This document shows positions 8,455 through 50,651 of a stretch of 64,000 bases of DNA, piece after piece (position 1 is the first letter of the stretch; every line of letters begins with the position of its first letter). The stretch lies in IMG/VR virus record IMGVR_UViG_3300031857_000002, positions 186,001 to 250,000 of that record. One strand, given 5' to 3'. Below the pieces are notes generated by a model. It saw nothing but the letters and a program-made list of their open reading frames with translations. It was not told the DNA's origin and made no database searches. The position numbers were made by a program, and so were the translations under genes.

Positions 8455-9117
8455 TTAGTTACGAGCCTGTATAGGCAGGGTCTTTCGAACCAGTTGTGGG
8501 CATGCTAGATTTATAAACAGCGCATCTTTTTCGTTGTCATGATCCACAAAGTAATTTGAAGGGATCCACATTCGTTGGCCGTTTAGTAACATTTTAAATC
8601 CTGGGCTGGGACGAAATTGATCTGCTCGTGTGAAAAAGTATTTCTTTATGAGTTCTCTTTGCGACTCATCTAGATAGCGTTCACGAAAATAGGTTCTAAA
8701 CTTGTGTTGGGGATTGTTTAGCACAACACAATCTGCGGGCAAACACACATCAGCTTGCTTGTGCTCAACTAACTTTGTGCCCGGATGTGCTACAACCGCC
8801 GCAAAATCTTCTGGAGTGTTGGTGTAGAACCACATGGTGTTGTTGCACACCACTTTCTTAAAGGGATTCTTGATGGCCAGCAAGAGATCACATACTTCGT
8901 GCAATCGTTCTTGATCACGATCTGATATAACTGTTCTAGTGCCACTGCTACGCCAATTCTGCAGATAGGTGTTACGCCAATAGATAGTGTTGTCAATACT
9001 TTTGTGGCTTAACTGGCGCATCATATTGCCTTCGGGAATCCACCATATCAAGCAGTGATAATACTGCTTGTAATATGGTTCGCTACGTTGCTCAATGTTT
9101 ACGTCAATATCAAACAT
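8455..9117 (-). CDS. Hypothetical protein
   Basis: Long ORF; start reassigned to MFDIDVN at 9117, which overlaps the clpA stop. Confidence 0.6.
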   Translation of the reverse strand: MFDIDVNIEQRSEPYYKQYYHCLIWWIPEGNMMRQLSHKSIDNTIYWRNTYLQNWRSSGTRTVISDRDQERLHEVCDLLLAIKNPFKKVVCNNTMWFYTNTPEDFAAVVAHPGTKLVEHKQADVCLPADCVVLNNPQHKFRTYFRERYLDESQRELIKKYFFTRADQFRPSPGFKMLLNGQRMWIPSNYFVDHDNEKDALFINLACPQLVRKTLPIQARN

Positions 9118-11371
9118 CTGGGAATCGGATAATACCGTCATCGTCCACCACAGGAATGATCTGTGCCACAGATTCAAAATGTACTGCGTCGTCTTGCATT
9201 GTGACAAACACATCACAGTCACTCAGTCGATCAAACAAGATCTTTTTAGATAGTGGTACCTTGATCAGCTCGTCAATCTTACGTGCCAAGGGTCTAGCAC
9301 CCATCTTGGGATCGTAGCCCTTGTCGGCCAACATGTCTATGACCTCTTCGCTGAGTACAAGTTTGATGTGTTTTTCATCCAAACTGGCCTTGAGCTGATC
9401 TGCAAACTTGATCACAATCTTCTTGATGGCCAATCGGTCCAGCTTGTTGAATCTGCAGATTTGATCAATACGATTACGCAGTTCTGGCTTGAAGAACTCT
9501 TTCATAGCTTTGTCTTCGTTACCAGTTTTTTCCTGACTTCCAAAACCAATAGCATTGCTTTCGTTGTCTCTAGCACCCAAGTTTGAAGTCAGGATAATAA
9601 TGGTGTTCTTAACATCCACACGCTTGCCTGCTGAACTAGTGATGTGCCCTTCGTCCAGCATCTGTAGCAAGATGTTGCTGACATCAGGGTGTGCTTTTTC
9701 AATTTCATCAAACAAGATGATTGAAAAAGGGTTCTTGGTAAGATCACTGATCAGCTTGCCGCCGCCAACGTTGCCATCTTCAAAGCCCACATAGCCTGGG
9801 GGTGCACCAATCAAACTTGATACTGTGTGTTTTTCCTGGTACTCACTCATGTCGTACTTCAACAGTTTCATGTCTAGGTTATCACTCAGCAGTTTGGCCA
9901 GTTCTGTTTTGCCTGTGCCTGTTGGACCCAAGAACAAGAAACTCGCCATAGGGCGAGTTGTTGCACCAATGCCTGCAAAGTTGATGTACACACGTTCCAG
10001 CACAGCATCCACTGCTTGATCCTGTCCGTAGAGCTTTTGCTTGATGTTGCTTTCAAGATCTATAATATTTGCTGAGCGTTCGTTCTGCAGTCGGTCCATT
10101 GGAATGCCTGCTACCTTGCTGACCTGTGCCATGATCATGTCTCGAGTGACAGTTACCAGGCCAGCATCCTTCACACGCTGTCGGGCACAAGCACCATCCA
10201 ACAAGTCAATACTCTTGTCAGGATTCTTCTTGTCATGAATATAACGTCCACTCAGTTCCACAGCCGCGGCCATTGCTTCTGTGTCGATCATCACATTGTG
10301 AAACTTCTCCAGTCGCGGACTCAGGCCAATAAGGATCTGTTCTGTGGTTGACGCATTGGGCTCGTCAATGCTCAAGCGATGGAATCTGCGCATCAACGCA
10401 CGATCTTTTTCAAATGACTCGTAGTATTCTTCCCATGTTGTGCTTGCAATAACTTTGAGGTTGCCCTTGGTGATTGCAGGTTTGAGCATGTTGGCAAAGT
10501 CCAGATTGCTTGACCCCGATGATCCTGCACCCTTCATGGTGTGTGCTTCGTCCACAAACAAGATACAGTTCTTCTTGGCTTCTAGTGCGGCAATAACTTG
10601 CTTGAACTTTTCTTCAAACTCACCGCGATACTTAGATCCTGCCAGTAATGAACCAATCTCCAGTCCCCACACTTCGTGACCTTTCAAGAACTCGGGCACG
10701 TTGTTAGCATGTATTTCTTGTGCAAGTCCGTCAATGATGGCAGTTTTGCCCACGCCTGGATCACCTACCATGAGCACATTGGCCTTGAATCGACGTGCCA
10801 ACACAGTGATCATGTCTTCTAGTTCTGCATTACGACCAATCAAGGGCTCCAGTTGATTCTTTGCGGCCATTGCTGAGATGTTGGTGCAATGCTCTTCCAA
10901 GATGTCTGTGGCCTGTTGTACATTCATTTTCACACTCTCGGGCTGGTGATTGCTTTGATAGAACTCAATAAACTCGGCCTTGCGGATACCATACTTGAGC
11001 AAGAAGTAGTGTGCATGACTGTTGTTTTCGGCCATGATGCTCAAGTACACATCAATCAGGCTCATGCTTCTGCGACCTGTAAACATGACCTGTACATTGG
11101 CACGATTAAATATGCGTTCCAGAGCTTGTGTTTTACGAGGTTGTAAATTTTCTGAAGCACTGATCAAATTGATCTGGCTGTCCAAGTAAGCATTGAGCTC
11201 TGTGTCCAGCAGATCTGCATCTGCACCAAATTTGTCTACCACACGTCTGAACGGCAAGTGGCGTAGCATGCCCAACAACAAGTGTTCTGTGACCACATAT
11301 TCGTGACACTTTTCTCTGGCCAATTTAACGGCTGCTTCGACCACTTGTTCAATTTCGGGATTGTTCTGCAT
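9110..11371 (-). CDS. clpA: ATP-dependent Clp protease ATP-binding subunit, ClpA-type
   Basis: Clp N-domain; Walker A GDPGVGKT and GPTGTGKT; pore loops KYRGEFE and GYVG; IGF loop; no ClpB M-domain. Start MQNNPE follows an AGGA RBS. Confidence 0.93.
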   Translation of the reverse strand: MQNNPEIEQVVEAAVKLAREKCHEYVVTEHLLLGMLRHLPFRRVVDKFGADADLLDTELNAYLDSQINLISASENLQPRKTQALERIFNRANVQVMFTGRRSMSLIDVYLSIMAENNSHAHYFLLKYGIRKAEFIEFYQSNHQPESVKMNVQQATDILEEHCTNISAMAAKNQLEPLIGRNAELEDMITVLARRFKANVLMVGDPGVGKTAIIDGLAQEIHANNVPEFLKGHEVWGLEIGSLLAGSKYRGEFEEKFKQVIAALEAKKNCILFVDEAHTMKGAGSSGSSNLDFANMLKPAITKGNLKVIASTTWEEYYESFEKDRALMRRFHRLSIDEPNASTTEQILIGLSPRLEKFHNVMIDTEAMAAAVELSGRYIHDKKNPDKSIDLLDGACARQRVKDAGLVTVTRDMIMAQVSKVAGIPMDRLQNERSANIIDLESNIKQKLYGQDQAVDAVLERVYINFAGIGATTRPMASFLFLGPTGTGKTELAKLLSDNLDMKLLKYDMSEYQEKHTVSSLIGAPPGYVGFEDGNVGGGKLISDLTKNPFSIILFDEIEKAHPDVSNILLQMLDEGHITSSAGKRVDVKNTIIILTSNLGARDNESNAIGFGSQEKTGNEDKAMKEFFKPELRNRIDQICRFNKLDRLAIKKIVIKFADQLKASLDEKHIKLVLSEEVIDMLADKGYDPKMGARPLARKIDELIKVPLSKKILFDRLSDCDVFVTMQDDAVHFESVAQIIPVVDDDGIIRFPDV

Positions 11372-11401
11372 GGGGTTCCTTTGTAAAACTATTATTGTGT
11401 T

Positions 11402-11430
11402 ATTATACTTGATGTTTTGATCACAAGCAA
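11402..11430 (-). promoter_or_regulatory. sigma70-type promoter upstream of clpA
   Basis: TTGCTT-N17-TATAAT on minus strand. Confidence 0.55.
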
Positions 11431-11444
11431 CCAATACGAAATAT

Positions 11445-12227
11445 TTATTCGCGGTATTTTTCGATTGCTTCTACCAATTCAGGTGCTAGTGTGGCAGGAA
11501 TTCGAGCATTTAATTTCACAAACATGTCACCTTGTGCGCCTCTACGATCTCTGAGTCCTTGACTGCGTAGTCTCAGCACAGCATTGGCTTGACAACGCGG
11601 TGGAACCTTGACTGTGAGACTGTGCCCCAAAATGTTGTTCACTGTGATGTCTGTACCCAAAATCAAATCCCACACTGAGATGCTGTGGTCCACAGTTAGG
11701 TTAAGCCCATCACGATGCCAAGCAGGATCTGGACGTATTCTAAATGTGATCACAAGATCCTGACCTCCTGGTGCAAGTCCGCCGTATTGGATATTGTCCC
11801 CGTCATTGAGCCCTAGAGGCACATCCAGTTCTACTGTGCTTTGTCCCTGTGATGTGGCCACTGCTACTGCTTTCTTTCCACCTTGGGCCACGTCTAGTAG
11901 GGAGATGTACAAGGTCATGCGCACATGATTCCTGCGTGGGTGCTGTTGCCCAAACCCGCCGCCGCCAAACATTTGGCTAAAAATATCATTGAACTGTGGT
12001 CCACCACCAAATCCTCCAAAGCCCCCAAACTGGGGTTGTGGGTTGTCGTACTCGGCACGTTTTTGTTCGTCACCTAGCACAGCATAGGCAGCTTGGATGG
12101 CCTGGAACTTGGCAGTATCACCACCCTTGTCCGGATGATGCTGACTGGCCAGTTTTCTAAAGGCCTGTTTGATTTCAGCGGCTGTGGCAGTTCGTGGGAC
12201 GCCTAGTGCGGCGTAGTGATCGGTCAT
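11445..12227 (-). CDS. dnaJ: DnaJ-class co-chaperone (CbpA-like, no Zn finger)
   Basis: J-domain with HPD (HHPDKGG), G/F-rich linker and DnaJ C-terminal domain. Confidence 0.92.
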
Positions 12228-15120: not shown

Positions 15121-15738
15121 TTAAACTCCCATTACATGCAGTGCATGTTCATAATGATGAATACGATCTTCTAGGCCAATGTATCCACCGTTGATGGCTC
15201 GAGTGAGTCCACGAATATCGCCTGCGTCAGCAAAGCGATTTAAATTGTTTTGTTCCCAGAACCAGCAGGCACTTTGTGCGGCGCCTTCAAATGTAGCAAG
15301 ATACTCAGCGGCTTCTTCTTCTGAAATGCCTAGACTGCCTGCAAAGAATGTGTAGTTGTCTTTGCCTGTTAACTGTATCAAGCCACGACCGCAGTAGCGC
15401 CAGCCATCTCCGGACTCTTCTGGACCGTTGCCCATGCGACTGGCATACACTCTGTTGGCAATCTTTTCTGGCTTGTTGGCATACTGTGCAGCCAAGGCAT
15501 CTGTGGGGAAATACTTGGGAAATACCTTTCGCAAACTAGCGGCTTTGTAGTTCAAGTTCTCTTTGATGAACACAAAGTTGCCTGACTCATGTGCGCACTG
15601 TGCAATAAAAGCTGCCACCCGCTGTGGTGTGTTGATTTCGTAGTCATCCAACAATTGTTCTAGTGCATCATACCAGTGATCAATGTGTGGATTTTTAACC
15701 ATTTGTTTTAGTTGTTCTCGTGTGAGTATCGTGCTCAT
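15121..15738 (-). CDS. Glycoside hydrolase family 19 endolysin
   Basis: AAFIAQCAHES, YCGRGLIQLTGKDNY, RAINGGYIGLEDR. Confidence 0.9.
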   Translation of the reverse strand: MSTILTREQLKQMVKNPHIDHWYDALEQLLDDYEINTPQRVAAFIAQCAHESGNFVFIKENLNYKAASLRKVFPKYFPTDALAAQYANKPEKIANRVYASRMGNGPEESGDGWRYCGRGLIQLTGKDNYTFFAGSLGISEEEAAEYLATFEGAAQSACWFWEQNNLNRFADAGDIRGLTRAINGGYIGLEDRIHHYEHALHVMGV

Positions 15739-15770
15739 TTAACGGCTCCTTGTTTGTATTTAATCTTTTG

Positions 15771-16412
15771 TTATCTACCCATTACCCAGGGATCATTGAT
15801 AACTGGGGTACCATCTGCCCTGCGCATGAAATTACCACCATGCATATCCCAACGATATCCACGAGCTTTGCCAATTTTCATCAAGTCATCCAGAGTGGCA
15901 ACCATCTGTACCACTCCTTTGGCACCCAGTGCTTTCTCCAGTAGTGCATAATCCCCTTGTCTAAAATTTTTCAAGTATCTCACAAACGCACTCACGCTGA
16001 TACCCTTGTGTTCAATATAACTCCTAGACATCCAGCCTAGATCATCCAAGGCACGTCTCATTGGGCCTTGAGTTTTTTTTAAAGGTTCAGTACGAATCAT
16101 TAGATAGCGATTGTCATTCCACATAAAACTGTCATGACCATAAAACCTTGGCAACAAAGGATTGTCACTGTGCTTGCTACAATAATCGTACCAGGCAAAA
16201 AACATTTTTTGATCAGCACTGAAGTTTTGACGATTGCCTTGAGTGCCAAATACCTTTAGCACCAGGCCAGTACTAGGCTCCAAGTACGCAGTTTGATCCA
16301 CTCCTTTACCCAGGAATTGATAACCCTTGGCTTCTAGCTCAGATCTGATGCCTTTGTCTGTGGTTGAAAATTCTTCTAGATTTTGCTCGTCAATGAACTC
16401 CTGTGCTCTCAT
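15771..16412 (-). CDS. Protein kinase-like fold protein with capsid-targeting-like N-terminus
   Basis: LGKGVDQTAY (Gly loop), VLKV (catalytic Lys), DMHGGNFM (catalytic loop), INDP (DFG equivalent); starts MRAQEFIDE. Confidence 0.7.
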   Translation of the reverse strand: MRAQEFIDEQNLEEFSTTDKGIRSELEAKGYQFLGKGVDQTAYLEPSTGLVLKVFGTQGNRQNFSADQKMFFAWYDYCSKHSDNPLLPRFYGHDSFMWNDNRYLMIRTEPLKKTQGPMRRALDDLGWMSRSYIEHKGISVSAFVRYLKNFRQGDYALLEKALGAKGVVQMVATLDDLMKIGKARGYRWDMHGGNFMRRADGTPVINDPWVMGR

Positions 16413-17032
16413 TTGGCAACACTTTCAAATATTTGTTTTTGTGCTCGATACCATTCCTGCCAGGCTTTTAGTTTTTCTGCGTTTTCGTGGCAGGCGCCGT
16501 AGTTGTCGACGACTGTTTCAAGGAGTTGACTGGCTTTAATGTCGCTGGGGGTTCCATCAACTGACTCGGCACCTCGGGCCACTTCATTACGACTGGCACT
16601 GTCGTGGAGCACGATGCTAGACTTAGGCAAAGAGCACTGGCTATCAAGCTGTGCGCCAGCAACTTCTCTAATGATTTCTCGGTTTGCATATACAGTTTCC
16701 TTTACAACTTTGATCTTGGTAACAAATTTGGTTTCAATTACGGTGTTGACTTCACGACTTCGAGCTTCGGCAATCTGAACTTTTTCTTCTAGTTCTTTGA
16801 TTTTGGCCAGCCATTTTTCTTCATTGCCGCGCCAGCCAAAAAAGTAAGCACCCACGCACAGCAGTAACACACCCACTAGTTCAGCAGGCATGCGGTACTG
16901 CATCATTATAGGAATCCAACGCACCAGCTTAGAAGCAATGTACAACAGCAAGCCTGCCGCAAATATCGCATAGGTCAACATGACAAAAATGCTGTCAGGC
17001 AACAAGCTAAACATCCACACCAACTGGTCCAT
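16409..17032 (-). CDS. i-spanin (Rz-like)
   Basis: N-terminal TMs, coiled coil, C-terminal LHDSAS...VVDNYGACHENAEKL; embedded lipoprotein gene. Confidence 0.75.
   Translation of the reverse strand: MDQLVWMFSLLPDSIFVMLTYAIFAAGLLLYIASKLVRWIPIMMQYRMPAELVGVLLLCVGAYFFGWRGNEEKWLAKIKELEEKVQIAEARSREVNTVIETKFVTKIKVVKETVYANREIIREVAGAQLDSQCSLPKSSIVLHDSASRNEVARGAESVDGTPSDIKASQLLETVVDNYGACHENAEKLKAWQEWYRAQKQIFESVAK
16468..16689 (-). CDS. o-spanin (Rz1-like lipoprotein) embedded in the +1 frame of the i-spanin
   Basis: Lipobox LASC followed by a Pro-rich segment, STTVPVVMKWPEVPSQLMEPP. Confidence 0.7.
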   Translation of the reverse strand: MQTEKSLEKLLAHSLIASALCLSLASCSTTVPVVMKWPEVPSQLMEPPATLKPVNSLKQSSTTTAPATKTQKN

Positions 17033-17084: not shown

Positions 17085-17666
17085 TTAAAAGTCCATGTTA
17101 CATTGAGCTACAAGCTGCCAGTTTTTTAAATATCTGTACGCATCTGACAATCGATTGTGTTCCAGCTGATCCCGCATGAACACACTGAATTCATCAGGAT
17201 CCAAATCAATGTTGATCAGTTGATCAGCGTACCAGTCAACCCCGGTAGTAAAGTAATATTGCCAATGAAAATGCATTACCTTAATAAACACTGTGTTAAG
17301 TCCAAGATTTTCAATATCTTGCTGATGGTGCTGTACGCCGTCCACATTCCAATAACGTGCTAATGCGTCCACTAGATTGCTTTTTATCTTGATGATTTTG
17401 CGGTTGGGATATGTTTTTCTTATCAAATCTGAATTCACAGCGTGAGTATAAGCAATGGGAATACTGTCGTTGATCTCACCGTGATCACTCAGTGTTGGAT
17501 ACCGATATTGATTGGCCGGATTGTGATGTATCAAATGATCATGGCCAATCAATGGAACATTGTGATAATTGCCCTGAAGATTCAGATCAAAAGATTTGCC
17601 CAGCAAATGATGTATAAATCTAAAGCCGCCTGCTCCAGGAAAGTAACTTACAACAACAGGATCCAT
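17085..17666 (-). CDS. Hypothetical, sulfotransferase-like N-terminal loop (PGAGG-F family)
   Basis: VVVSYFPGAGGFRF start, similar to 24470-25357 and 33026-33655. Confidence 0.45.
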   Translation of the reverse strand: MDPVVVSYFPGAGGFRFIHHLLGKSFDLNLQGNYHNVPLIGHDHLIHHNPANQYRYPTLSDHGEINDSIPIAYTHAVNSDLIRKTYPNRKIIKIKSNLVDALARYWNVDGVQHHQQDIENLGLNTVFIKVMHFHWQYYFTTGVDWYADQLINIDLDPDEFSVFMRDQLEHNRLSDAYRYLKNWQLVAQCNMDF

Positions 17667-18724
17667 TAGTATACAAATAAATTCTGGTCACCCCGCTCGG
17701 GAAATAAATCAACTCTACTGTCATTGCGACGTATGTCCAAGGTTAGACAGTGCAGTCCACCGTCCCAGAATGTTCTTGTTCTAAATGGCATGGGGTGTGC
17801 GGTAATGCCATGCTGTTCTAGCGCACGAAATACACCTTCATTTTCCCCTACCATTAGCACGTTCTTTTCATCAATCACAAGACAGTTTAGTTCAAAGTAG
17901 GTTTCTGTGTAGTCGCCTACCCAGTCTTGTGCGTGTTTTATCACATGATCGTTAAATTTTGCCGAATTTGATACTCCGGGCAGCCACCATTTGCCGTTGT
18001 GCCATGGCCCTGTTCTACTGGATTTTTTTTTGTGGCGTAGAAATTCTGGTTGGTTTATGTTTATTTTTTCCCAGCCAGGGAATGTACGATCGTAATCGTC
18101 AAAGTACTCGCTGGTCAGTAATAATCCAGGCTTGAGCACAGCAAAACATCCATCCACATGTCCGCCATTGTTTAACATATGCAACCGATAATCTTTAAAA
18201 GTTTTTTGTATATATTCAACGTCTACATGCTCGTTGTGCCAATAACTGTCTAGGTAAAAGTCGCGACCCACACGTACAGTATTGGCACCGTTGATATGCC
18301 CGGCTCCAGGAATGTTTGGTCGATCAACTATGCGGCTGCCAAGGTCCTTGACATAGTCAGCAACAGCATCAGCCCAGGCTCTGTGATCCCAGGTTGCTCC
18401 AAACAATGTGTTGCCAAACACCAGGAAATGATCACGTGGTGTAATCATGGGCTTGCATAGTTGCCCTGCACTAGTGGGATGACCTTGCGGCATCAAAAAA
18501 TCTTCAATACGATCGTAACGGGGTCTGCGAACTTGCACACCGTGTTCTTCTAGTTTGCGTTGTATTACTGCAAGATCCTCTTGAGTCTTTTGAGTAATTT
18601 CATAAAAGATATCCTGTACTTCTGACTCTAGATGATCATAAAAATGTGCTGGATAACAGTTGCCCAACCATACTTCTTCAAGTCGGCCCCAGTTGGTGAA
18701 ACTGTTTATCTTTGGCAGCGTCAT
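17666..18724 (-). CDS. Amidinotransferase (glycine/inosamine-phosphate amidinotransferase family)
   Basis: NSFTNWGRLEEVWLG, ITPRD, GHVDG, FWDGGLHCLTLDIRR (catalytic Cys). Confidence 0.88.
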   Translation of the reverse strand: MTLPKINSFTNWGRLEEVWLGNCYPAHFYDHLESEVQDIFYEITQKTQEDLAVIQRKLEEHGVQVRRPRYDRIEDFLMPQGHPTSAGQLCKPMITPRDHFLVFGNTLFGATWDHRAWADAVADYVKDLGSRIVDRPNIPGAGHINGANTVRVGRDFYLDSYWHNEHVDVEYIQKTFKDYRLHMLNNGGHVDGCFAVLKPGLLLTSEYFDDYDRTFPGWEKININQPEFLRHKKKSSRTGPWHNGKWWLPGVSNSAKFNDHVIKHAQDWVGDYTETYFELNCLVIDEKNVLMVGENEGVFRALEQHGITAHPMPFRTRTFWDGGLHCLTLDIRRNDSRVDLFPERGDQNLFVY

Positions 18725-19515
18725 TCTAATCCCAGTTCTTTTCTAATAGCAGTGGCCGAAATTGAATGAGTTGCAGAATCAAATGATTCTTGTTCTATCT
18801 TGTAGCCCACGTCTCGACCGTAGGTGATATTTACTATGTTGGGCACAACTTGTATTTCGTATTGACCTTGATATAACATGTCTAGATCTCTACGTATATA
18901 ATTCCTCACCTGTTCTATAGCAAAGGGATTTGATCCTTGCCAGCCTTGACAATCTCTAATTTGAATTACCACTTGACCTGTTTTTGCAATGGCACGTTCA
19001 AACAACTTGCGATGTCCTGCATGCCATGGTTGCCAACGACCTAGCATTTGCACAGTTTCTTTCTGCCAATCGAATACAGGGCGTCTGCGATTATCTAAGA
19101 TATGTGCGGCCACAAACTCGCCCCACTTCTCACCATGCTGTTCAGTGATGCGGAAATCATATTGCTCAGGCGGAACGAATGCTTTATTAGTATCTTCGTA
19201 GCGGCCCTGATCAATGGTGTCAACCCATATGGTCCAGTCTGCTTTGAAATTGTTGCGCATGTCAACCAAGGGAGCCACAAAGTCACAGATCACATAGTCT
19301 ACATCTGTCATTGCATCTGCCAGTTCGCGCATACGTAAACTCTGACGTATACGGCCTGCTTCACTGAAATCCCAGTCGTTGTATTTTTTACGTACATCGT
19401 CGGCATTTAACCAACCCACACGTTTCTTTTCTGCTTGCAAGTGGTCTACAATGTGTTGTGCCAGGTATGTTTTGCCGGCCCCTGGCAGGCCCATGATTAA
19501 AATACGTTGTGTCAT
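18721..19515 (-). CDS. cysC: Adenylylsulfate kinase (CysC-like) fused to a C-terminal HxGH nucleotidyltransferase domain
   Basis: GLPGAGKT P-loop, LNADDVRK, DFSEAGRIRQ, ICDFVAP; then GRWQPWHAGH. Confidence 0.8.
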   Translation of the reverse strand: MTQRILIMGLPGAGKTYLAQHIVDHLQAEKKRVGWLNADDVRKKYNDWDFSEAGRIRQSLRMRELADAMTDVDYVICDFVAPLVDMRNNFKADWTIWVDTIDQGRYEDTNKAFVPPEQYDFRITEQHGEKWGEFVAAHILDNRRRPVFDWQKETVQMLGRWQPWHAGHRKLFERAIAKTGQVVIQIRDCQGWQGSNPFAIEQVRNYIRRDLDMLYQGQYEIQVVPNIVNITYGRDVGYKIEQESFDSATHSISATAIRKELGLE

Positions 19516-19538: not shown

Positions 19539-20666
19539 ATGAATGTATTAATTTTAACTCCGGACCGCGTTGGCAGCACTTTATTACAACGTGTGATCAC
19601 TGTGTACATGCAATCGCACACTTACAATCGCCCTGTGATTAACTTACACGAACTCACAAACGGATTAATGAAATACTACAGTCCTGTGTTCAATCAAGAA
19701 GTGCTGGGCAAACCAACTGACCGTCCTTGGGGATATTACCAGTCACTCGACGAAATACTGGAGCATTTAAACAGCACAGATCACTACAAGACCGCACGAT
19801 TGGCACATTATCATATTTTAAATCGTCAAGATCCATTGGCTAATCAGGTGCCTTTTTATCAATACCTAAATGATAACTTTTTTATAATCAGCGCCCAAAG
19901 GAAAAATCTACTAGAACATGCACTAAGTTGGTGTATTCAAGGACATTCAAAAAAGTTAAATGTTTACACACATCAAGAAAAGATTGATACATTTGCTGAC
20001 ATATATCAAAATAGAATCACAGTTGATGTGAATGTAATGATAACGTATCTCAACAAGTATGTGAACTACTTGAACTGGGTTGACAATCATTTTACAGTGA
20101 ATTCATACTTTGAATATGAAACACACATGCCTAAAATTGAAGAATATATACTGGGTTTGGATATATTTGGTGGACAACAAAAAAAATCATGGCATGACAC
20201 GTTTGGCATTGAGTTTCAAGACTGGAATCGATATCATTATCTTGCCAGTGACATGAGCGGCATAAGCAAACAGTTACCAAGTCCAGACAACTTAAAAATC
20301 ACGTTTGATTCTCAAGACCAGTTGGACAGTGTAGATCTAGTACCTGTGTTTAATAAAAATGCAATTCATAATAGTCTAAGCATTGGCGACAAACAGTTTT
20401 TAAAACAACATACTAGCAAATACATCAGCAGTTACAAAGCAATTGATGAGTTGGTTCAGCATAAGATAATGGTCACAGGCATTCCCATTAAACTGCAAAC
20501 CATGATGGAAAAAAGCCGACTGATACGCAATTTTGATCAATGCGCAGAAGCATACAATGACTGGGTCAAGCAACGTGGAATAGGCGATCCTTATACCAAT
20601 ACTGATATCAAGAAAATTGCACTAGATGAAATTAGCACCTGGCATTCGATGCCAAGGCTGGAATAA
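19539..20666 (+). CDS. Sulfotransferase-like protein
   Basis: TPDRVGSTLLQR (5'-PSB-like loop) and RKNLLEHALSW (3'-PB-like); start reassigned to MNVLIL. Confidence 0.55.
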   Translation: MNVLILTPDRVGSTLLQRVITVYMQSHTYNRPVINLHELTNGLMKYYSPVFNQEVLGKPTDRPWGYYQSLDEILEHLNSTDHYKTARLAHYHILNRQDPLANQVPFYQYLNDNFFIISAQRKNLLEHALSWCIQGHSKKLNVYTHQEKIDTFADIYQNRITVDVNVMITYLNKYVNYLNWVDNHFTVNSYFEYETHMPKIEEYILGLDIFGGQQKKSWHDTFGIEFQDWNRYHYLASDMSGISKQLPSPDNLKITFDSQDQLDSVDLVPVFNKNAIHNSLSIGDKQFLKQHTSKYISSYKAIDELVQHKIMVTGIPIKLQTMMEKSRLIRNFDQCAEAYNDWVKQRGIGDPYTNTDIKKIALDEISTWHSMPRLE

Positions 20667-21480
20667 TTTCGCATACTAACGCATTGCTAGTAAGAATATC
20701 ATAATGAAATCCATCACGAGCATAATCCAATTGCTCTGTCTGGATCACATTATCAAAATCTAGATTGTCCCCAGCTGGTGCCCAGGACGGAATAGCTGAA
20801 TGTACAATATTTCCCTGTAGTTGTTGCATGCACAATCGAGTATTAATAATGTCCTCGTCAGTGGTAGAATTAATGTGTTCTAACCTTAGTTCTTCACTAG
20901 ATGGGTCGATGCTTGACCAATCATGCAACTGCTTTATTTCTGTCTTTATCCAGGCCGGCAAATTATCAAAATCCTGAATACTTTTACAATCCGGCCAACT
21001 TACATCTTGTACAGATTTATAAAAATTTAAAAATCTTTCATTTAAAATGATGCTTGTGTCAAACTCTCGACGATGCATATAACTCCATTGGACTACTATA
21101 TTAGCCTGAGGAAACTGCGTTAAAATTGCAACTGCAATCCTGGCAATCCAGTTATTACTTGCTCCATCCATGCTGACATTTATTACACGACGCCTTAGGC
21201 GTTGCTGTAGCATATAAGGCCAGGTATGTTCAAGTGGGCTGCCTAGTCCCACAGTAAAACTATCTCCAACGCACCATATCACATCAGACAAATCATCAGG
21301 CCACTCTGCATCTCTAAATCCGCGACTGTTATAATGATATTCAACCTTGTGCGGGTACGACAAAAAATGTTCACGATTCAAGCACAACTCAAGACTATCC
21401 ATGCCTGACTCTAGCCAATGCTGGTTGACTCTTGACGGCAAATATAATTCAGGTAATAGACTTGGTTTTGTTATCGCCAT
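20632..21480 (-). CDS. SGNH/GDSL-like hydrolase-fold protein
   Basis: YNSRGFR, CVGDSFTVG, NVSMDGASN, C-terminal DGFH. Confidence 0.6.
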   Translation of the reverse strand: MAITKPSLLPELYLPSRVNQHWLESGMDSLELCLNREHFLSYPHKVEYHYNSRGFRDAEWPDDLSDVIWCVGDSFTVGLGSPLEHTWPYMLQQRLRRRVINVSMDGASNNWIARIAVAILTQFPQANIVVQWSYMHRREFDTSIILNERFLNFYKSVQDVSWPDCKSIQDFDNLPAWIKTEIKQLHDWSSIDPSSEELRLEHINSTTDEDIINTRLCMQQLQGNIVHSAIPSWAPAGDNLDFDNVIQTEQLDYARDGFHYDILTSNALVCEIIPALASNARC

Positions 21481-21482
21481 TT

Positions 21483-22127
21483 TTATAATGTGCTTAAAAA
21501 TAGTTTTGTCTTGTCAGTAATAATTCCAGTGATCTGCAGAGTGGCTCGGGGCACATGTCCTGCATTGGCGGTGGCGTGCGGTACGTTGATCCAGTCAAAA
21601 GTGCTGACATCCCCGGCCTGCCACCCTGTCCATGCATAGTTGCCATAACTCCAGAAATGTCCCTGCTGCCAGTCTGTGAGCTGTACAAAATAACGCACAA
21701 CCTGAGAAGGGTCAGTAGGCATCCATTTTTCCAGCTTGTCTAAGTGTAGATTCCATACTTGCCCAGGATGTTGCACATGTATTCTAGCCATGCTTTTTTC
21801 CAGGCCAAATTGATCAGCAATGTGTTGAAACACAGGATCAAGATTGTAGTTCAAGTTAGTGACCACATAGTCACGTCCGTAACCTTGTTGCTCTAGATCG
21901 TAGTCTTCTTGATCGTATTCTTCTGTGGCACGTTTTAATGGGTCCGAGTCGCGACCACGAGTGCGCCAGGTCACAGGTGCAGATGCAGTTATAGCCGCAG
22001 ATAATTCTTCTGCCCATGTAGGTTGAATGTGTCCTAGGTGTTGTACTGTGTCCCATCGTGGATCTATTACGCTATTATCAAAATGATATTGACTTCTTTG
22101 TTGAGTTATTGCCCAAGCTGATTTCAT
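21483..22127 (-). CDS. 2OG-Fe(II) oxygenase-like (cupin) protein
   Basis: PGQVWNLHLD (HxD) and distal PHATANAG His; start MKSAWA at 22127. Confidence 0.65.
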   Translation of the reverse strand: MKSAWAITQQRSQYHFDNSVIDPRWDTVQHLGHIQPTWAEELSAAITASAPVTWRTRGRDSDPLKRATEEYDQEDYDLEQQGYGRDYVVTNLNYNLDPVFQHIADQFGLEKSMARIHVQHPGQVWNLHLDKLEKWMPTDPSQVVRYFVQLTDWQQGHFWSYGNYAWTGWQAGDVSTFDWINVPHATANAGHVPRATLQITGIITDKTKLFLSTL

Positions 22128-22744
22128 ATTACTGTTACCTTTATGTCTGACGCTGTGTAGTCTTGATAGTATTCTGTTGCTGGAACTTGAATACCAACAG
22201 TTCTGGCCAGTTGTCTGTTGGTTTCCACAACTGTGGCAGGCCATTCACGGGCCGCACGACGATTGCCCTCATTTTCTCTGCGTATGCATTCGGCCATTTG
22301 ACGCAGGTCTCGGTAATAGTCCCGGTACAATGGATATGTTATTTTAAACTCCCCACATTTGACCCACCATCCTAGGCAAGCATCATCTGTGCGATCAATC
22401 AGCACAATAGGACAATCAGGCCAGGTTTTTTTGATATAATCGATATGATATCCAAACACATGGCTTTTGATAATACGTACACCTGTGCCACTAAATGGTG
22501 CATCAAACTCTGCTTCGTTCTGTTCTCGAGTGTATTGATCCAGGTGTTCAAAATGATCACCAAATTCCATGGCTGGTCCCCAGTACACTCCCATGTGTAA
22601 CAATTCCATTGTGCCCGAAGCGTCATGACGATATGTTCTGGCTTCTGAGTAATCAGTTGAGTCTACGTCGGCGCTGTAGTAAATGTTTTTTACTACGGAA
22701 CTCCATTTAGAGCCCGGGGCTCCACTTACAAAAATATATTTCAT
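22124..22744 (-). CDS. Sulfotransferase/P-loop-like hypothetical protein
   Basis: IFVSGAPGSKWSSV, IIKSH, IVLIDR pattern; start MKYIFV at 22744. Confidence 0.5.
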   Translation of the reverse strand: MKYIFVSGAPGSKWSSVVKNIYYSADVDSTDYSEARTYRHDASGTMELLHMGVYWGPAMEFGDHFEHLDQYTREQNEAEFDAPFSGTGVRIIKSHVFGYHIDYIKKTWPDCPIVLIDRTDDACLGWWVKCGEFKITYPLYRDYYRDLRQMAECIRRENEGNRRAAREWPATVVETNRQLARTVGIQVPATEYYQDYTASDIKVTVI

Positions 22745-23700
22745 TCTGGTCGGATCCTTCTGGCAATGGGTTGCCACGTTTGTTGTAGTCGGGCCATGCT
22801 AGCACGTACACCTGCTGGCGAGTGTTCTTCAGTGGTGATGTACATCATGTTTTCTCGAAACCTTGCTCCTGCTGCTGTTGAGCGTATGGCAGGTACAAAC
22901 TGTTCAGCATACCATTTCTGTATGTCTTGTGGAGTACCTGGTGGTAGTACCATGTTCCAGCAGCCGTGTATGCTGAGTCCTGGTGCTGCCTTGCTCATTA
23001 ACGGCGCAGATTCTAATCCTGGCAAGGGTCGTGTGTCAGCGATACCAATCAACTTGAGCTTGCCTGCAATCACATGCGGATATCCCACTGCCACAGGAGT
23101 AACGCCAAATTCCACATGCCCGCCCATGACATCTAATAGTGCCTGAGCAGGACCTTTGTACATGGCTGTTTCAACTCGATCACCGCCAGCAACATTTAGC
23201 TTGTCTTTAAGATATTCCACTGCTAATTTATGACCCCCTCCGCCAATGGCTATAGTAATGGGCCTTTCTTTCTTTCTAATGGCTGCCACCAGTTCTTCGG
23301 GCGTGTTGATACGACTGCTGGGGTGTGCCCAGAATGCTAGTGGACTACGTGCAATATTAGCAATGGGTTCTAGATCCATGGGATTATATTTAATTACCTT
23401 AGGATACCATACTTCAGGAGTGACCCAATTTGACTGACACGCAGGCACCGCAATAGTGTGTCCGTCTGCAGGTGTAGTCACAAAGTGATTGATAGCAATG
23501 TTGCCATCAGCACCCGGTCTGTGTTCAGACACAAATTTGGCACCGGTTGACTTTTCTACAATATCTGCTACAATACGAAATGATATTTCATTTCCGGCAC
23601 CTGGTCCATTGGGGAATATAACAGTGACAGGTTTGGTGGGTTGCCAGGCCCAGGCTGATGAGGCAAACAAGGCCACGGCAAGAAATTTTAGTGTACGCAT
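22741..23700 (-). CDS. Bug/TctC tripartite tricarboxylate transporter substrate-binding protein
   Basis: Signal peptide, KPVTVIFPNGPG, EHRPGADGNIA, MYKGPAQALLDVMGGHVE, LPPGTP. Confidence 0.88.
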   Translation of the reverse strand: MRTLKFLAVALFASSAWAWQPTKPVTVIFPNGPGAGNEISFRIVADIVEKSTGAKFVSEHRPGADGNIAINHFVTTPADGHTIAVPACQSNWVTPEVWYPKVIKYNPMDLEPIANIARSPLAFWAHPSSRINTPEELVAAIRKKERPITIAIGGGGHKLAVEYLKDKLNVAGGDRVETAMYKGPAQALLDVMGGHVEFGVTPVAVGYPHVIAGKLKLIGIADTRPLPGLESAPLMSKAAPGLSIHGCWNMVLPPGTPQDIQKWYAEQFVPAIRSTAAGARFRENMMYITTEEHSPAGVRASMARLQQTWQPIARRIRPE

Positions 23701-23751: not shown

Positions 23752-24480
23752 ATGAACACAAAAATTTTCAACCTTTTACAAAAAAATCTACAACTTGCGT
23801 TTAATTTACCCAAGTACGCCGCAATCACAATTGACGCAGATACCAATGTACACAGCCTGCCCTGGACTCCTGCTCGCTACAGCAAGTTCAAAGACGCTGT
23901 GGAAGCAGAACTCAGTCTGCCTTGTGAGTATCGTGGCACCTTGCGAGAGATTGCGGATGACCTTAGTGAACGCTACACACATAGATTCTTTGCGGAAATA
24001 TGGAAGCCAAGAACAGGCGACTATGAACACACAGGCTGGGAACTAGCTGAAGAAATCAACAAACTGAACCCGGAACGTGTGCTTGATGTGGGCTGTGGCT
24101 ATCATCCTTTTAAAGGGCGCATTCACAATCTTGTAGGAATTGATCCTTACAATAACTGCGCAGATTATGAAGTAGACATCTTAGACTACAAGGTAAAACC
24201 ACAATCGCACGATGTGATCATTGCCCTGGGATCAATTAACTTTAATTCACGAGACGAAATCGAATCACGTTTTGCACACTGTGTTTCATTACTAAAGCCT
24301 GGCGGTAAATTCTTTTTGCGAGCCAATCCTGGCATTACCCACAAGACAGGACCTTATGTGGAGATCTTTTCGTGGACTTTTGAAGTTGTGAATGAATTTG
24401 CAGAAACATACAATTTAAATCTAGACACCTTTAAGAAAGATGCCAATGACCGATTGTATTTTGTGTATACTAAACGCTAG
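23752..24480 (+). CDS. Class I SAM-dependent methyltransferase with extra N-terminal domain
   Basis: VLDVGCG motif I, VGIDP, LKPGGKFF. Confidence 0.8.
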   Translation: MNTKIFNLLQKNLQLAFNLPKYAAITIDADTNVHSLPWTPARYSKFKDAVEAELSLPCEYRGTLREIADDLSERYTHRFFAEIWKPRTGDYEHTGWELAEEINKLNPERVLDVGCGYHPFKGRIHNLVGIDPYNNCADYEVDILDYKVKPQSHDVIIALGSINFNSRDEIESRFAHCVSLLKPGGKFFLRANPGITHKTGPYVEIFSWTFEVVNEFAETYNLNLDTFKKDANDRLYFVYTKR

Positions 24481-25357
24481 GAACCCAAGGTTCAGAATCA
24501 CAGCGTAGCAGTGCTTGTTGTATCACGGGCTGTGCATCCACTGTGCTCAAGGCAATGAATTCATCAATGGGCATTTTGAGATAGCGTTCGGCCATGGACA
24601 CATTGCGGTCATGATACTGTTGCATCATACTCACAAGATGCTGGGACGAGTCATAATCAATACCAAAGTGCTGGCACACACGAGCATGCTCTGATTCGCT
24701 GTCTCCAAACATCAATTCAGACAGATCAATGTTGAATAGTGATTGGTAGTCCAGTGGCAAAAACCAGTGCTGATACTCGTTCTGTATCCTGTTGATTACC
24801 GGGATATTTTCCTTGTGGTCACGCCAGGAGTCAACCTCAAATTGATAAAACCATTCTCGTCCGTTGATGTAGTGTTTAAAATTTTCCACGGTGTCATGGT
24901 CTTGATCAAATTGACTTGACAAGTGCTGTGCCCATCCTGATTCTGGGGCAGATGGCAAGTATCTTTCCACGGTAAATCTAAAAAGACGCATTTTGAGCCA
25001 CATCAGTACAAAAAAGAATTTCTTATGTTCGTCAGCACAGGTTATAAAGGCTTTTTGTGCTGGGTCGGCAAACACAATGCCCGAAAATGATCTATTGTCA
25101 GACTGTAAATTGCGTTGGCAGTAAGGGTGAGTGATCAGAAACAACTTGCGGTCTGTGCCCTTGGGAGAAAATTCAAATGTGTTGTTTAGTATATGAACGT
25201 ATCTGTTGTTCTTTAGTTGTTTCACAGTAGAAGGTATGCAGCCAGGATGTTGACTCAGCCAGTAGGCCATGAACTCTCCGCCAAACCCTCCAGGATAAAT
25301 CAACAAATATGCCGATTCAGGACGCACCAGTTGCGTGGTCAATTTCTGATCTAACAT
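24470..25357 (-). CDS. Hypothetical (PGGFGG-F family)
   Basis: LLIYPGGFGGEFMAYWL near the N-terminus. Confidence 0.5.
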   Translation of the reverse strand: MLDQKLTTQLVRPESAYLLIYPGGFGGEFMAYWLSQHPGCIPSTVKQLKNNRYVHILNNTFEFSPKGTDRKLFLITHPYCQRNLQSDNRSFSGIVFADPAQKAFITCADEHKKFFFVLMWLKMRLFRFTVERYLPSAPESGWAQHLSSQFDQDHDTVENFKHYINGREWFYQFEVDSWRDHKENIPVINRIQNEYQHWFLPLDYQSLFNIDLSELMFGDSESEHARVCQHFGIDYDSSQHLVSMMQQYHDRNVSMAERYLKMPIDEFIALSTVDAQPVIQQALLRCDSEPWVPSV

Positions 25358-30758: not shown

Positions 30759-31499
30759 TTGAGTAGAAATCGCGCTGCGAAAGCACAAAACAAACGTATG
30801 ATACAATCTGTAGAAAACACCATCAGCTTTACCCAACAAGCACCTAGAGTGGCTAATCGCCGCATAGACCTGATCCCTCGCACACGAAATCAGGAGAAGT
30901 TGGTGTTGGCTCTACAAGATGAAAGTCAGCACATTGTGGTCACAGTAGGACCTGCAGGTACTGGTAAGACTTATCTTGCTATGCAGGCCGCTGTCAAAGC
31001 CTTGAAAGAGGGGCAATGCGATAGGATAGTAATGACACGTCCGGCCGTGGGCGTAGAAGGAGAACAACACGGATTTTTACCAGGTAACTTAGTGGCCAAA
31101 ATGGAGCCATGGACTCGTCCCTTGTTGGATGTCATGCGAGAATATTATCGCCCTCAGGACATCGTAACCATGATAGAAGATCAGGTAGTGGAGATTGCGC
31201 CTCTGGCATTCATGCGCGGCCGCACCTTTAAAAACAGTTGGATTATAGCCGATGAAATGCAAAACGCAACTCCGGCCCAGGCCAAGATGTTAATGACCCG
31301 CATAGGAACGAACAGTAAGATAGTGATCACAGGAGACGTTGAACAAGCAGACCGTTCAAACGGCGACAACGGCCTGTTGGATCTATGTGAACGATTGGCA
31401 GCTACTTCAGTAGCAGGGATTGCTGTTTGTGCTCTAGAAGCACGTGATGTACAGCGTCATAAGATAATTGGATCAGTGTTGAAATTGTACGCAGATTAG
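30759..31499 (+). CDS. phoH: PhoH-like ATPase
   Basis: GPAGTGKT, MRGRT, IIADEMQN, ITGDVEQAD. Confidence 0.92.
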   Translation: MSRNRAAKAQNKRMIQSVENTISFTQQAPRVANRRIDLIPRTRNQEKLVLALQDESQHIVVTVGPAGTGKTYLAMQAAVKALKEGQCDRIVMTRPAVGVEGEQHGFLPGNLVAKMEPWTRPLLDVMREYYRPQDIVTMIEDQVVEIAPLAFMRGRTFKNSWIIADEMQNATPAQAKMLMTRIGTNSKIVITGDVEQADRSNGDNGLLDLCERLAATSVAGIAVCALEARDVQRHKIIGSVLKLYAD

Positions 31500-49557: not shown

Positions 49558-49867
49558 AACTTGAACCACATCCGCAAGTGGTTTGAGCTTGCGGATTATT
49601 GATTACAAAACTAGATCCCATATCTGAATCGTTATATTTGATCTCTGCGTTTTGTAAGTATTGCATGCTCATGGCATCCACTAACACTGTGACATCTTCA
49701 TAAACAAAATCAAAGTCGTCTTCGTTCTTTGTTTCTTCCAATGTAAATCCATATTGCATACCTGAGCAACCTCCACCTTGCACAAACACACGGAGTTTGG
49801 CATTGGGGTTGTTCTCTTCTGCTAAGATGTCTCTTAACTTGGTAACTGCGCTTGTGTCTAATTTCAT
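49547..49867 (-). CDS. erpA: A-type Fe-S cluster carrier (ErpA/IscA family)
   Basis: [17 protein letters not shown] and CGCGSSF. Confidence 0.9.
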
Positions 49868-50415: not shown

Positions 50416-50422
50416 GTTGTAT

Positions 50423-50641: not shown

Positions 50642-50651
50642 AAGCAATTAC

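Follow-up and report, generated by a model that had tools for sequence, protein, structure and literature searches.

A 264-residue protein encoded by a jumbo phage joins a trimmed, APS-kinase-like domain to a very small HxGH nucleotidyltransferase domain, and we tentatively regard it as a candidate compact PAPS synthase. The pair is widespread in phages and in marine and soil Alphaproteobacteria and recurs beside sulfotransferases, but both enzyme activities are inferred from sequence, predicted structure and genomic context. The window analysed is the stretch of 64,000 nucleotides at positions 186,001 to 250,000 of the IMG/VR record IMGVR_UViG_3300031857_000002, a jumbo-phage record of 320 kb. 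A sequence-only reading had described a CysC-like kinase followed by a domain of roughly 110 aa with GRWQPWHAGH, and this observation holds. Its interpretation, a stripped-down one-gene route from sulfate to PAPS with an HxGH domain related to Sat-type ATP sulfurylases, is partly supported. The two-domain architecture, the CysC-like kinase, the HxGH domain and the domain order shared with metazoan PAPSS were correct, but the HxGH domain is not a Sat-type sulfurylase. The functional inference gains support from fusions, gene neighbourhoods and distribution that could not be seen in the sequence alone, all of it circumstantial, and the alternative offered in the same reading, that the HxGH domain adenylates another substrate, remains possible.

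The gene and its two domains

The open reading frame has an ATG start, needs no alternative genetic code, and its stop codon overlaps the start of the next gene (ATGA at 18721-18724). It is not a chance open reading frame, since PHROG 10255 covers its full length (E 5e-48), more than 8000 protein clusters and 2080 representatives at 50% identity match it, both domains have nearly invariant catalytic motifs, and the AlphaFold model is confident (mean pLDDT 94.2). The family is very abundant, uncharacterised and not specific to this phage, and literature searches found nothing on this fusion. The features and their positions are listed in the table.

Table. Positions in the window of the gene, its domains and motifs, and the neighbouring genes.
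Position	Strand	Residues or length	Feature
18721..19515	-	264 aa	Whole gene: APS-kinase-like domain plus minimal HxGH nucleotidyltransferase domain
19081..19515	-	residues 1-145	Kinase domain, an APS-kinase homologue with a shortened lid
19468..19491	-	residues 9-16	Walker A P-loop, GLPGAGKT
19057..19080	-	residues 146-153	Interdomain linker
18724..19056	-	residues 154-264	Minimal HIGH-superfamily nucleotidyltransferase domain
19012..19041	-	residues 159-168	GRWQPWHAGH, the HxGH ATP-binding motif
18802..18822	-	residues 232-238	YGRDVGY loop after strand 4, a family signature
18742..18762	-	residues 252-258	ISATAIR, the second nucleotidyltransferase motif (ISxTxxR)
17666..18724	-	352 aa	Translationally coupled downstream gene, an amidinotransferase homologue
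19539..20666	+	375 aa	Divergent neighbour, a candidate Stf0-like sulfotransferase (unconfirmed)
20632..21480	-	282 aa	GDSL/SGNH-like protein

The N-terminal domain is a genuine APS-kinase homologue in sequence, fold and acceptor-site residues. It matches the Pfam family APS_kinase, PF01583 (E 3.5e-11), but only over residues 5-92, corresponding to profile positions 5-94 of 152. About the top 40 Foldseek hits in the PDB are all APS kinases (E 1e-6 to 1e-5, TM-score normalised to the target up to 0.80), and the PAPSS1 kinase domain is among the best structural matches. In the P-loop G9, L10, G14, K15 and T16 are invariant or nearly invariant in 51 family members. Aligned with canonical CysC, the domain keeps the P-loop, the (D/N)xDxxR motif, N46, F50-S51, R55, R61, P82 of the ISP motif, R87 and R105, and of these F50, S51, R55, R61 and P82, which include the Phe and Arg residues that hold APS in canonical CysC, are invariant. 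The (D/N)xDxxR motif, which corresponds to DGDxxR, reads NADDVR, with D39 and R42 conserved and the first Asp varying (N, D or E), and a nearly invariant Gln58 replaces Asn in the DRxxN motif. The domain also has a deletion of about 19 residues in the mobile lid, which removes CExRDPKGLYKK, and the protein scores far below the NCBIfam CysC cut-off (41.8 against 127 bits). Other members of the family, such as the proteins P0135 and P0168, are intermediate towards canonical CysC. No helix or strand is found from residue 141 to 154 in the model, and in SAR11 the gene is split near this point into two overlapping open reading frames.

The C-terminal domain of about 111 aa (domain model pLDDT 93.2) gives only weak hits to cytidylyltransferase-like and NMNAT families when the single sequence is searched, with 25-27 bits against NCBIfam cut-offs of 127 and 181. 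A profile of the domain searched against PDB sequences showed that its nearest relatives are the archaeal/NadM NMN adenylyltransferases, with E-values from 7e-12 to 1e-9 (MJ0541 7e-12, NadM 3e-10), whereas no ATP sulfurylase was found even at E 10. PF01747 has no hit in the protein or anywhere in the phage genome. In structural comparison (VIA) NMNAT and PPAT are closest, Z 10.6 and 10.5, followed by Thermus ATP sulfurylase 1v47 at Z 8.9 (114 of 117 residues aligned, rmsd 3.0), while other sulfurylases score Z 5.8-6.6, which shows superfamily-level similarity only. The catalytic domain of a Sat-type enzyme is about 200 aa and is preceded by a PUA-like domain, which is absent here.

The motifs GRxQPxHxGH, NPFxxxE and SxTxIR are shared with MJ0541 (1f9a) and Francisella NadM (2qjt). 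In GRWQPWHAGH the G, R, Q, H and H are invariant in 48 domain sequences, and this motif is of the NMNAT type when set against the QxRNPxHxxH motif of sulfurylases. S253 is at least 90% conserved and R258 invariant, and HMMER aligned ISATAIR with the SGTEIR motif of MJ0541. In YGRDVGY, G233, R234 and G237 are invariant and Y232, V236 and Y238 at least 90% conserved; judged from the motif alone, the loop may resemble the GRD loop of ATP sulfurylases. The domain is about 50 residues shorter than the NadM-type enzymes. The profile match stops at about residue 80 of the NMNATs and the remainder aligns only at GY...SxTxIR, and 106 residues align to positions 1-135 of the 164-residue 1f9a chain. Relative to MJ0541 about 30 residues around the NMN site and the C-terminal helices are missing, and the segment after strand 4 is replaced by the YGRDVGY loop. 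The mini-domain is a cut-down version of these enzymes without the complete NMN-binding half.

Comparison with other two-domain enzymes shows where the protein differs. Metazoan PAPS synthase (PAPSS1/2) has the same order, APS kinase first and a HIGH-superfamily adenylyltransferase second, but it is about 620 aa, with a full Sat-type sulfurylase including a PUA-like domain and a full-length kinase lid. In the bacterial and fungal Sat-APS kinase fusions (e.g. Aquifex 2gks) and in CysN/C (NodQ), sulfate activation and APS kinase also sit on one polypeptide, but the order is opposite to Sat-APS kinase and the activating module here is neither Sat nor the CysD/CysN GTPase pair. NadR (NMNAT plus ribosylnicotinamide kinase) and CoA synthase (PPAT plus dephospho-CoA kinase) likewise fuse a HIGH nucleotidyltransferase to a P-loop kinase acting in the same pathway, but with the nucleotidyltransferase first and a different kinase family.

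Fusions, neighbourhoods and distribution

The mini-domain is repeatedly linked to APS kinase. In the protein P0241 it is fused, in the opposite order, to a full-length canonical APS kinase (PF01583 E 5.7e-63), and this architecture recurs in more than 120 marine protein clusters of about 310 aa at 63-85% identity, from Tara Oceans and NCBI genomes. Together with the fusion in the phage and the split adjacent genes of SAR11, this makes three arrangements in which the mini-domain is linked to an APS-kinase-type domain.

Sulfotransferases are recurrent neighbours. In related phages a confirmed sulfotransferase (PF13469 4e-17, PF00685 4.5e-10) is the commonest neighbour family, found at 18 of 80 loci, in 17 of the 18 just upstream on the same strand. 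In Bradyrhizobium two TPR-sulfotransferases (E 1e-42 and 4e-44) lie directly upstream of the gene, in Inquilinus an arylsulfotransferase lies directly downstream, sulfotransferases also flank the gene in other genera, and nine of 47 non-SAR11 cellular loci have a sulfotransferase within about 4 kb. In Bradyrhizobium sulfotransferases also lie next to copies of CysD-CysN/C. Some relatives fuse the kinase to further domains (P0201, P0176 and P0182) that carry motifs like both PAPS-binding motifs, but this is only suggestive, as the profile support is weak (Pfam E 0.095; hhalign probability 54% and 30%). The contigs of P0135, P0168 and a further protein, P0188, were too short to inform on gene context.

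In SAR11 the pair appears to fill a gap. A complete Pelagibacter genome has sulfotransferases (E 1e-34 and 1e-25) but no Sat, no CysD and no canonical CysC, and its only clear APS-kinase-family match is the kinase of this pair (1.6e-11), while a second, marginal hit (1.7e-4) lies elsewhere. Among 61 SAR11-family genomes, which are incomplete and were compared without correction for phylogeny, the mini-domain (29 genomes) and CysN/C (5 genomes) never co-occur (one-sided p 0.034), and having either route associates with an intact sulfotransferase (odds ratio 6.3, p 0.006). Sat is found in only 3 of the 61, and 8 of the 9 genomes with a stand-alone canonical-like APS kinase also have the mini-domain.

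Possible functions

We consider it possible, although the case is tentative, that the gene encodes a compact bifunctional enzyme supplying PAPS, or a very close analogue, to sulfotransferases. In this view the mini-domain (HxGH plus ISxTxxR, with invariant Arg160, Arg187, Arg234 and Arg258) would use ATP to adenylylate sulfate, giving APS and pyrophosphate, and the lid-shortened kinase would then phosphorylate the 3'-OH of APS to give PAPS, which would pull the unfavourable first step forward. The analysis establishes the domain identities, the conserved catalytic and acceptor-site residues, the natural fusions and the genomic associations, while both substrates and both activities are inferred from them. 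The kinase step is the better supported of the two, and the sulfate-adenylylating role of the mini-domain is the weaker link. Against this explanation stand the closer relationship of the mini-domain to NMN adenylyltransferases than to ATP sulfurylases in both sequence and fold, the shortened lid and low CysC score, and the lack of a confirmed sulfotransferase in this particular phage genome. Furthermore, SAR11 has AprA and can make APS without any sulfurylase, and some genomes carry both this pair and a canonical APS kinase, which could mean that the two have different functions.

Other explanations are conceivable, but each appears less likely. The protein may be an APS kinase only, converting APS made by the host (through CysDN, Sat or AprAB) into PAPS for sulfotransferases, while the mini-domain has a structural, oligomerisation or regulatory nucleotide-binding role or performs an unrelated adenylyltransfer. 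The kinase evidence and the sulfotransferase links also fit this, as do AprA in SAR11 and the NMNAT-like sequence of the mini-domain, and stand-alone kinase domains of about 145 aa exist, for instance in the Ralstonia phages RsoM2USA and RSL1, so that the kinase can work without the mini-domain. However, the mini-domain keeps every catalytic motif of an active nucleotidyltransferase, is linked to an APS-kinase-type domain in three arrangements and never co-occurs with CysN/C in the 61 genomes. Somewhat less likely is a synthase of a different PAPS-like donor, where a nucleotide is joined to a substrate other than sulfate and the kinase adds the 3'-phosphate. This would follow the logic of CoA synthesis (PPAT then dephospho-CoA kinase) or of the Campylobacter phosphoramidate pathway, in which an APS-kinase homologue 3'-phosphorylates cytidine diphosphoramidate. 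The remodelled lid, Gln58, the genomes with both the pair and a canonical APS kinase, the structural closeness of PPAT, and the amidinotransferase, methyltransferase and GDSL-like enzymes encoded nearby in the window would agree with it. In addition, one relative, P0263, fuses the kinase to an RmlA/MobA-type sugar-phosphate nucleotidyltransferase and is encoded beside a CMP-sugar synthetase gene. On the other hand, the mini-domain is fused to a fully canonical CysC, whose substrate is APS, its recurrent partners are sulfotransferases, and it lacks the extra substrate-binding elements of NMNAT and PPAT, which argues for a small substrate.

The least likely of these explanations is an NAD salvage or repair enzyme, a NadR-like pair in swapped order with a nicotinamide riboside kinase and an NMN adenylyltransferase making NAD+, which would help the phage to resist defences that deplete NAD+. 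The best sequence and structure matches of the mini-domain are NMNAT, NadM and NadR, and GRWQPWHAGH and NPFxxEQ closely resemble the NadM motifs. In Sano/Salvo-type phages, and only there, the gene overlaps a NADAR-domain gene, which hints at NAD or ADP-ribose chemistry, and NadR-type fusions and NAD+ synthesis genes are known in jumbo phages (PMC7824862, PMC9503650). However, the kinase is not of the RNK type, PF13521 (AAA_28) giving no hit for the protein, the phage genome has no NAPRTase/Nampt and no NADAR, the partners of the mini-domain are APS kinases and sulfotransferases rather than Nampt or Nudix, the NMN half of the domain is missing, and the fusion to canonical CysC and the sulfotransferase neighbourhoods would not be explained.

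If the mini-domain (GRxQPxHxGH ... YGRDVGY ... ISATxIR) does adenylylate sulfate, which is possible but far from certain, it would be a third, unrecognised class of ATP sulfurylase, derived from NMNAT-like nucleotidyltransferases and much smaller than the only two solutions to sulfate activation currently known, Sat and CysDN. Paired with an APS kinase, fused in either order or split into two genes, it would give phages and many Alphaproteobacteria a complete route from sulfate to PAPS in about 260-310 aa. It would also be the missing ATP sulfurylase of most SAR11, which have AprAB and sulfotransferases but no Sat or CysDN (most SAR11 lack ATP sulfurylase, PMC10356861), and would explain how these bacteria, among the most abundant in the ocean, can use or dispose of APS and feed their sulfotransferases. 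The many viral genes annotated simply as cysC in surveys of auxiliary metabolic genes (PMC8066274, PMC13172472) would then be read as self-sufficient PAPS synthases serving phage-encoded sulfotransferases, which points to sulfation of some phage or host molecule during infection, and a PAPS synthase of about 260 aa could be a useful tool for enzymatic sulfation. If the domain instead has another substrate, the family would still define an uncharacterised and very abundant bifunctional enzyme.

Neighbouring genes in the phage

The DNA around the gene had no match in the phage collection searched, and the immediate neighbours are variable. A fixed operon with the amidinotransferase, Stf0-like and GDSL-like genes can be rejected, as each accompanies the gene in only 3-4 of 80 related loci. 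The amidinotransferase homologue is adjacent in 4 of the 80 and is probably not part of the core function; it has PDB sequence hits to SxtG, AGAT and StrB1 (E 2e-11 to 1e-9), including the C-terminal GGxHC motif. The divergent neighbour is a sulfotransferase candidate only from language-model features, which score 0.95-0.97 against Stf0 sulfotransferase clusters, and from the invariant motifs TPDRVGSTLL and R121...S130, whereas Pfam, NCBIfam, PHROGs, a PDB profile search and hhalign gave nothing significant. An apparent sulfotransferase elsewhere in the phage genome (E 1.6e-45) was an artefact of a single-linkage cluster that mixed domain types; the open reading frame is TPR plus GT9-like, and a cleaned HMM found no sulfotransferase of that type in the genome. 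The GDSL/SGNH-like protein has a weak PF13472 hit, and its homologues are fused to this kinase domain in other proteins: the C-terminal half of P0149 is 36% identical to it (E 1e-62) and that of P0203 38% identical (E 4e-54).

The gene and its two domains

The 264-aa ORF is real, and what the sequence-only reading had described, a CysC-like kinase followed by a domain of about 110 aa with GRWQPWHAGH, was confirmed. The motif occupies residues 159-168. Pfam finds APS_kinase (PF01583, E 3.5e-11), but only over residues 5-92, which correspond to profile positions 5-94 of 152, and a weak cytidylyltransferase-like signal at residues 159-188. NCBIfam gives sub-threshold hits to adenylyl-sulfate kinase models for the N-terminal half, and hits to archaeal NMN adenylyltransferase and NadM models for residues 157-225. 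PHROG 10255, annotated "kinase", covers the whole length (E 5e-48), and the gene is matched by more than 8000 clusters at 90% identity and by 2080 representatives at 50% identity. The AlphaFold2 model (mean pLDDT 94.2) shows a predicted kinase domain at residues 1-140, a loop, and a second alpha/beta domain at residues 154-264.

About the top 40 Foldseek hits in the PDB for the kinase domain are all APS kinases. In 51 family members the nearly invariant residues are G9, L10, G14, K15, T16, D39, R42, F50, R55, Q58, M62, P82, R87, D108, T109, F113 and P116, and an alignment with canonical CysC domains showed that these fall on the P-loop, the DGDxxR motif, the LGFSxxDRxENIRR segment and the FISP motif. 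According to established structural work on APS kinases, these are the elements that hold Mg-ATP and APS. The difference is a deletion of about 19 residues, which removes CExRDPKGLYKK of the mobile lid, while Arg105 and Pro116 remain aligned. Family members such as the proteins P0135 and P0168 read DLGFSxxDRxEQARRMG and bridge to the canonical sequence. The domain is therefore a derived APS kinase, whose acceptor site looks built for a nucleoside 5'-phospho compound.

To place the second domain we searched a profile of 48 domain sequences against PDB sequences. The search found M. jannaschii NMNAT (7e-12), NadM (3e-10) and M. thermautotrophicus NMNAT (about 1e-9), followed weakly by NadR, PPAT and PanC, and no ATP sulfurylase appeared up to E 10. 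A separate model of the domain (pLDDT 93.2) was also compared with known structures.

VIA scores of the modelled HxGH domain against known structures
Structure	Z
NMNAT (1f9a) and NadM (2qjt)	10.6
PPAT	10.5
NadR	9.3
Thermus ATP sulfurylase 1v47 (114 residues aligned)	8.9
Other ATP sulfurylases	5.8-6.6

The domain is thus a minimal member of the HIGH nucleotidyltransferase superfamily, nearest to NadM-type NMNATs and not to Sat-type enzymes. Compared with those NMNATs it lacks about 30 residues after strand 4, where they bind NMN, as well as the C-terminal helices, and in their place stands the invariant YGRDVGY loop. Both catalytic motifs (HxGH and ISxTxxR) and several arginines (R160, R187, R234 and R258) are conserved. 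The intact ATP site, together with a much reduced second-substrate site, argues for a small substrate, but this is an inference.

Fusions, neighbours and distribution

The same mini-domain was found at the N-terminus of another protein, P0241 (311 aa), where it is 42% identical to ours and is followed by a full canonical APS kinase (PF01583, E 5.7e-63). This is not a single case, as more than 120 clusters of about 310 aa, at 63-85% identity and full coverage, come from many marine datasets. They sit in a conserved locus with an MFS/PTR2 transporter divergently upstream, then an unannotated protein of about 655 aa, and then a giant HemolysinCabind (RTX-type) protein. The 655-aa protein has no Pfam match and could be the user of the product. 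Protein P0188 has the mini-domain followed by the derived kinase, and in many SAR11 genomes the kinase and the mini-domain are two overlapping ORFs in different frames, while other SAR11 genomes have them fused in open frames of 258-289 aa, which makes a natural fission/fusion series. The mini-domain is therefore linked to an APS-kinase-type domain in four arrangements, which is strong evidence that the two act in one pathway.

The kinase is also fused to other partners. These are a GDSL-like domain homologous to a nearby ORF of the phage (36-38% identity, E 1e-62 and 4e-54) and, in protein P0263, an RmlA/MobA-type sugar-phosphate nucleotidyltransferase (PF00483, E 4.6e-15) encoded beside a CMP-sugar synthetase-like gene. 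The latter suggests that some branches of the kinase family serve other nucleotide-activated donors. A third group (P0201, P0176 and P0182) carries extra domains with motifs like the two PAPS-binding motifs of sulfotransferases, although the profile support for this group is weak.

In 80 related viral loci (66-91% identity) the commonest neighbouring family is a confirmed sulfotransferase (PF13469 4e-17, PF00685 4.5e-10). It occurs in 18 loci, in all but one of them within four genes upstream, and always on the same strand. A separate small cytidylyltransferase-like protein of 149 aa (PF01467, E 1.3e-12; TGGFDPIHSGH) often lies next to the gene as well, in 11 of the 80 loci. The family is also chromosomal in cellular genomes, in SAR11, SAR86, Bradyrhizobium, Inquilinus, Xanthobacteraceae, Acetobacteraceae and others, at 36-60% identity. 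In Bradyrhizobium sp. Pha-3 two TPR-sulfotransferases (E 1e-42 and 4e-44) lie directly upstream on the same strand, and in Inquilinus limosus an arylsulfotransferase lies directly downstream. Nine of 47 non-SAR11 loci have a sulfotransferase within about 4 kb. In the same Bradyrhizobium genome another sulfotransferase lies next to a CysD-CysN/C copy, so the gene occupies the same kind of genomic position as a canonical PAPS-forming module.

A complete Pelagibacter genome (G001) has sulfotransferases (E 1e-34 and 1e-25), but no Sat, no CysD and no canonical APS kinase. Its only clear APS-kinase-family match is the kinase of this pair, and a second, marginal hit (E 1.7e-4) lies elsewhere. SAR11 does have AprA, and it has been noted that most SAR11 lack ATP sulfurylase (PMC10356861). 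We extended the comparison to a sample of 61 genomes of that family.

Occurrence of the mini-domain, Sat, CysN/C and sulfotransferases in the SAR11-family sample
Feature	Genomes of 61
Mini-domain	29
Sulfotransferase (PF13469)	19
Sat	3
CysN/C	5
Mini-domain and CysN/C together	0

The absence of overlap between the mini-domain and CysN/C has a one-sided p of 0.034. Of 18 genomes with an intact sulfotransferase 15 have one route or the other, against 19 of 43 without one (odds ratio 6.3, p 0.006), and of 9 genomes with a stand-alone canonical-like APS kinase 8 have the mini-domain. These tests ignore phylogenetic relatedness and the genomes are incomplete, so the numbers are supportive but not decisive.

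A possible compact route to PAPS

The most economical reading is that the pair makes PAPS, the mini-domain forming APS from ATP and sulfate and the kinase phosphorylating it at the 3' position. The sequence relationships, the fusions and the genomic distribution are results of the analysis, whereas both activities are inferred. The kinase-to-PAPS step is fairly well supported, but the sulfurylase step rests on fusion, distribution and the small-substrate argument, and the reading as a whole remains tentative. The interpretation in the sequence-only reading, a one-gene route from sulfate to PAPS, is therefore only partly supported; the functional idea is plausible, although its stated basis, a Sat-type domain, is wrong.

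Several findings speak against this reading. The sequence of the mini-domain is NMNAT-like, and in Sano/Salvo-type siphophages (Stenotrophomonas phage Bhz60 and Xylella phage Bacata) the start of the homologue overlaps the end of a NADAR (COG3236) gene, a pairing that is conserved between the two genera and is not explained by the PAPS model. The fusion in P0263 is to a sugar-phosphate nucleotidyltransferase, AprAB is an alternative source of APS, and some genomes carry both this pair and a canonical APS kinase. Furthermore, no confirmed sulfotransferase was found in this particular phage genome.

Viral cysC is listed as an auxiliary metabolic gene in surveys (PMC8066274, PMC13172472), and phage NadR- and NadM-type enzymes have been described in reviews, but literature searches returned nothing on this fusion or on the mini-domain. 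GenBank records call the protein "kinase", "adenylylsulfate kinase" or "hypothetical protein". On present evidence it is best regarded, provisionally, as a PAPS-synthase-like bifunctional enzyme whose activating domain is non-orthologous.

The surrounding phage region

The region belongs to a 320-kb jumbo-phage record from IMG/VR, estimated to be 92% complete. It is a T4-like phage, with a Gp23 major capsid protein and a prohead protease elsewhere in the genome.

Coordinates of the gene, of other features in the window and of loci in related genomes
Location	Strand	Feature
Window 18721..19515	-	APS-kinase-like/HxGH gene
Window 17666-18724	-	Amidinotransferase homologue
Window 20632-21480		GDSL-like ORF
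Window 22741-23700	-	TctC/Bug-family periplasmic solute-binding protein
Window 6017-7453, with 4895-6013 and 3969-4850	- (all)	Second HxGH protein, beside a radical SAM enzyme and a weakly glycosyltransferase-like ORF
Window 17085-17666, 24470-25357, 33026-33655, 22124-22777	- (all)	ORFs with a glycine-rich N-terminal motif
Window 15121-17032	-	Lysis cassette
Window 15121-15738		GH19-like endolysin
Window 16409-17032		Possible spanin ORF
Window 16468-16689		Embedded ORF with a lipobox-like sequence
Window 9110-12227; 49547-50647; 30759-31499; 58878-60854	-; -; +; -	Host-like genes
L153:8001-8785 and other SAR11 loci (L150-L167)		Kinase and mini-domain, overlapping ORFs or fused
L171:7001-14933, L174-L176		Marine locus of the mini-domain/canonical CysC fusion
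L075:4680-5129 and 10 other related phage loci	- (L075)	Small cytidylyltransferase-like protein
L001:5565-6741 and L002:5565-6741 (Stenotrophomonas phage Bhz60, Xylella phage Bacata)		Homologue overlapping a NADAR gene
L007:2133-3302		P0263, kinase fused to an RmlA/MobA-type nucleotidyltransferase

The gene lies in an accessory island. Downstream, and translationally coupled to it by overlapping stop and start codons (ATGA), is the amidinotransferase homologue (SxtG, AGAT and StrB1, E about 1e-11), a protein with no assigned substrate that ends in the GGLHC catalytic-Cys motif, and it is followed by an unknown 193-aa ORF. Divergently upstream is a 375-aa protein that language-model features place near Stf0 sulfotransferases (0.95-0.97), but neither HMM nor profile-profile tests confirmed this. 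Further along are the GDSL-like protein, the TctC-type binding protein and a methyltransferase. The neighbourhood is not conserved, as each of those neighbours accompanies the gene in only 3-4 of the 80 related loci, the amidinotransferase in 4. The N-terminus of the phage-encoded TctC/Bug-family protein (PF03401, E 1.7e-23) reads like a signal peptide, which together with the window's G+C of about 45% may hint at a betaproteobacterial host, although this is speculation. The second HxGH protein, 478 aa and starting MKQLVIMPGGFHPFHAGH (PF01467, E 3.5e-4), may with its neighbours be part of another small-molecule or glycan module.

The ORFs with the glycine-rich motif carry it after a hydrophobic strand (FPGAGGF, YPGGFGGE, FNGGSAGDF, GAPGSKWSS) and match no family in Pfam, PHROGs or NCBIfam; they may be a paralogous set of nucleotide-binding transferases. 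The lysis cassette lies just downstream of the island, and its endolysin matches PF00182 (E 1.3e-4), whereas the spanin is suggested only by inspection of the sequence. The host-like genes form a rich set: a ClpB-type AAA+ chaperone and a DnaJ; an Fe/Mn superoxide dismutase, an IscA/ErpA-like Fe-S protein and translation factor IF-1 in a row; PhoH; and a B12-binding radical SAM enzyme.
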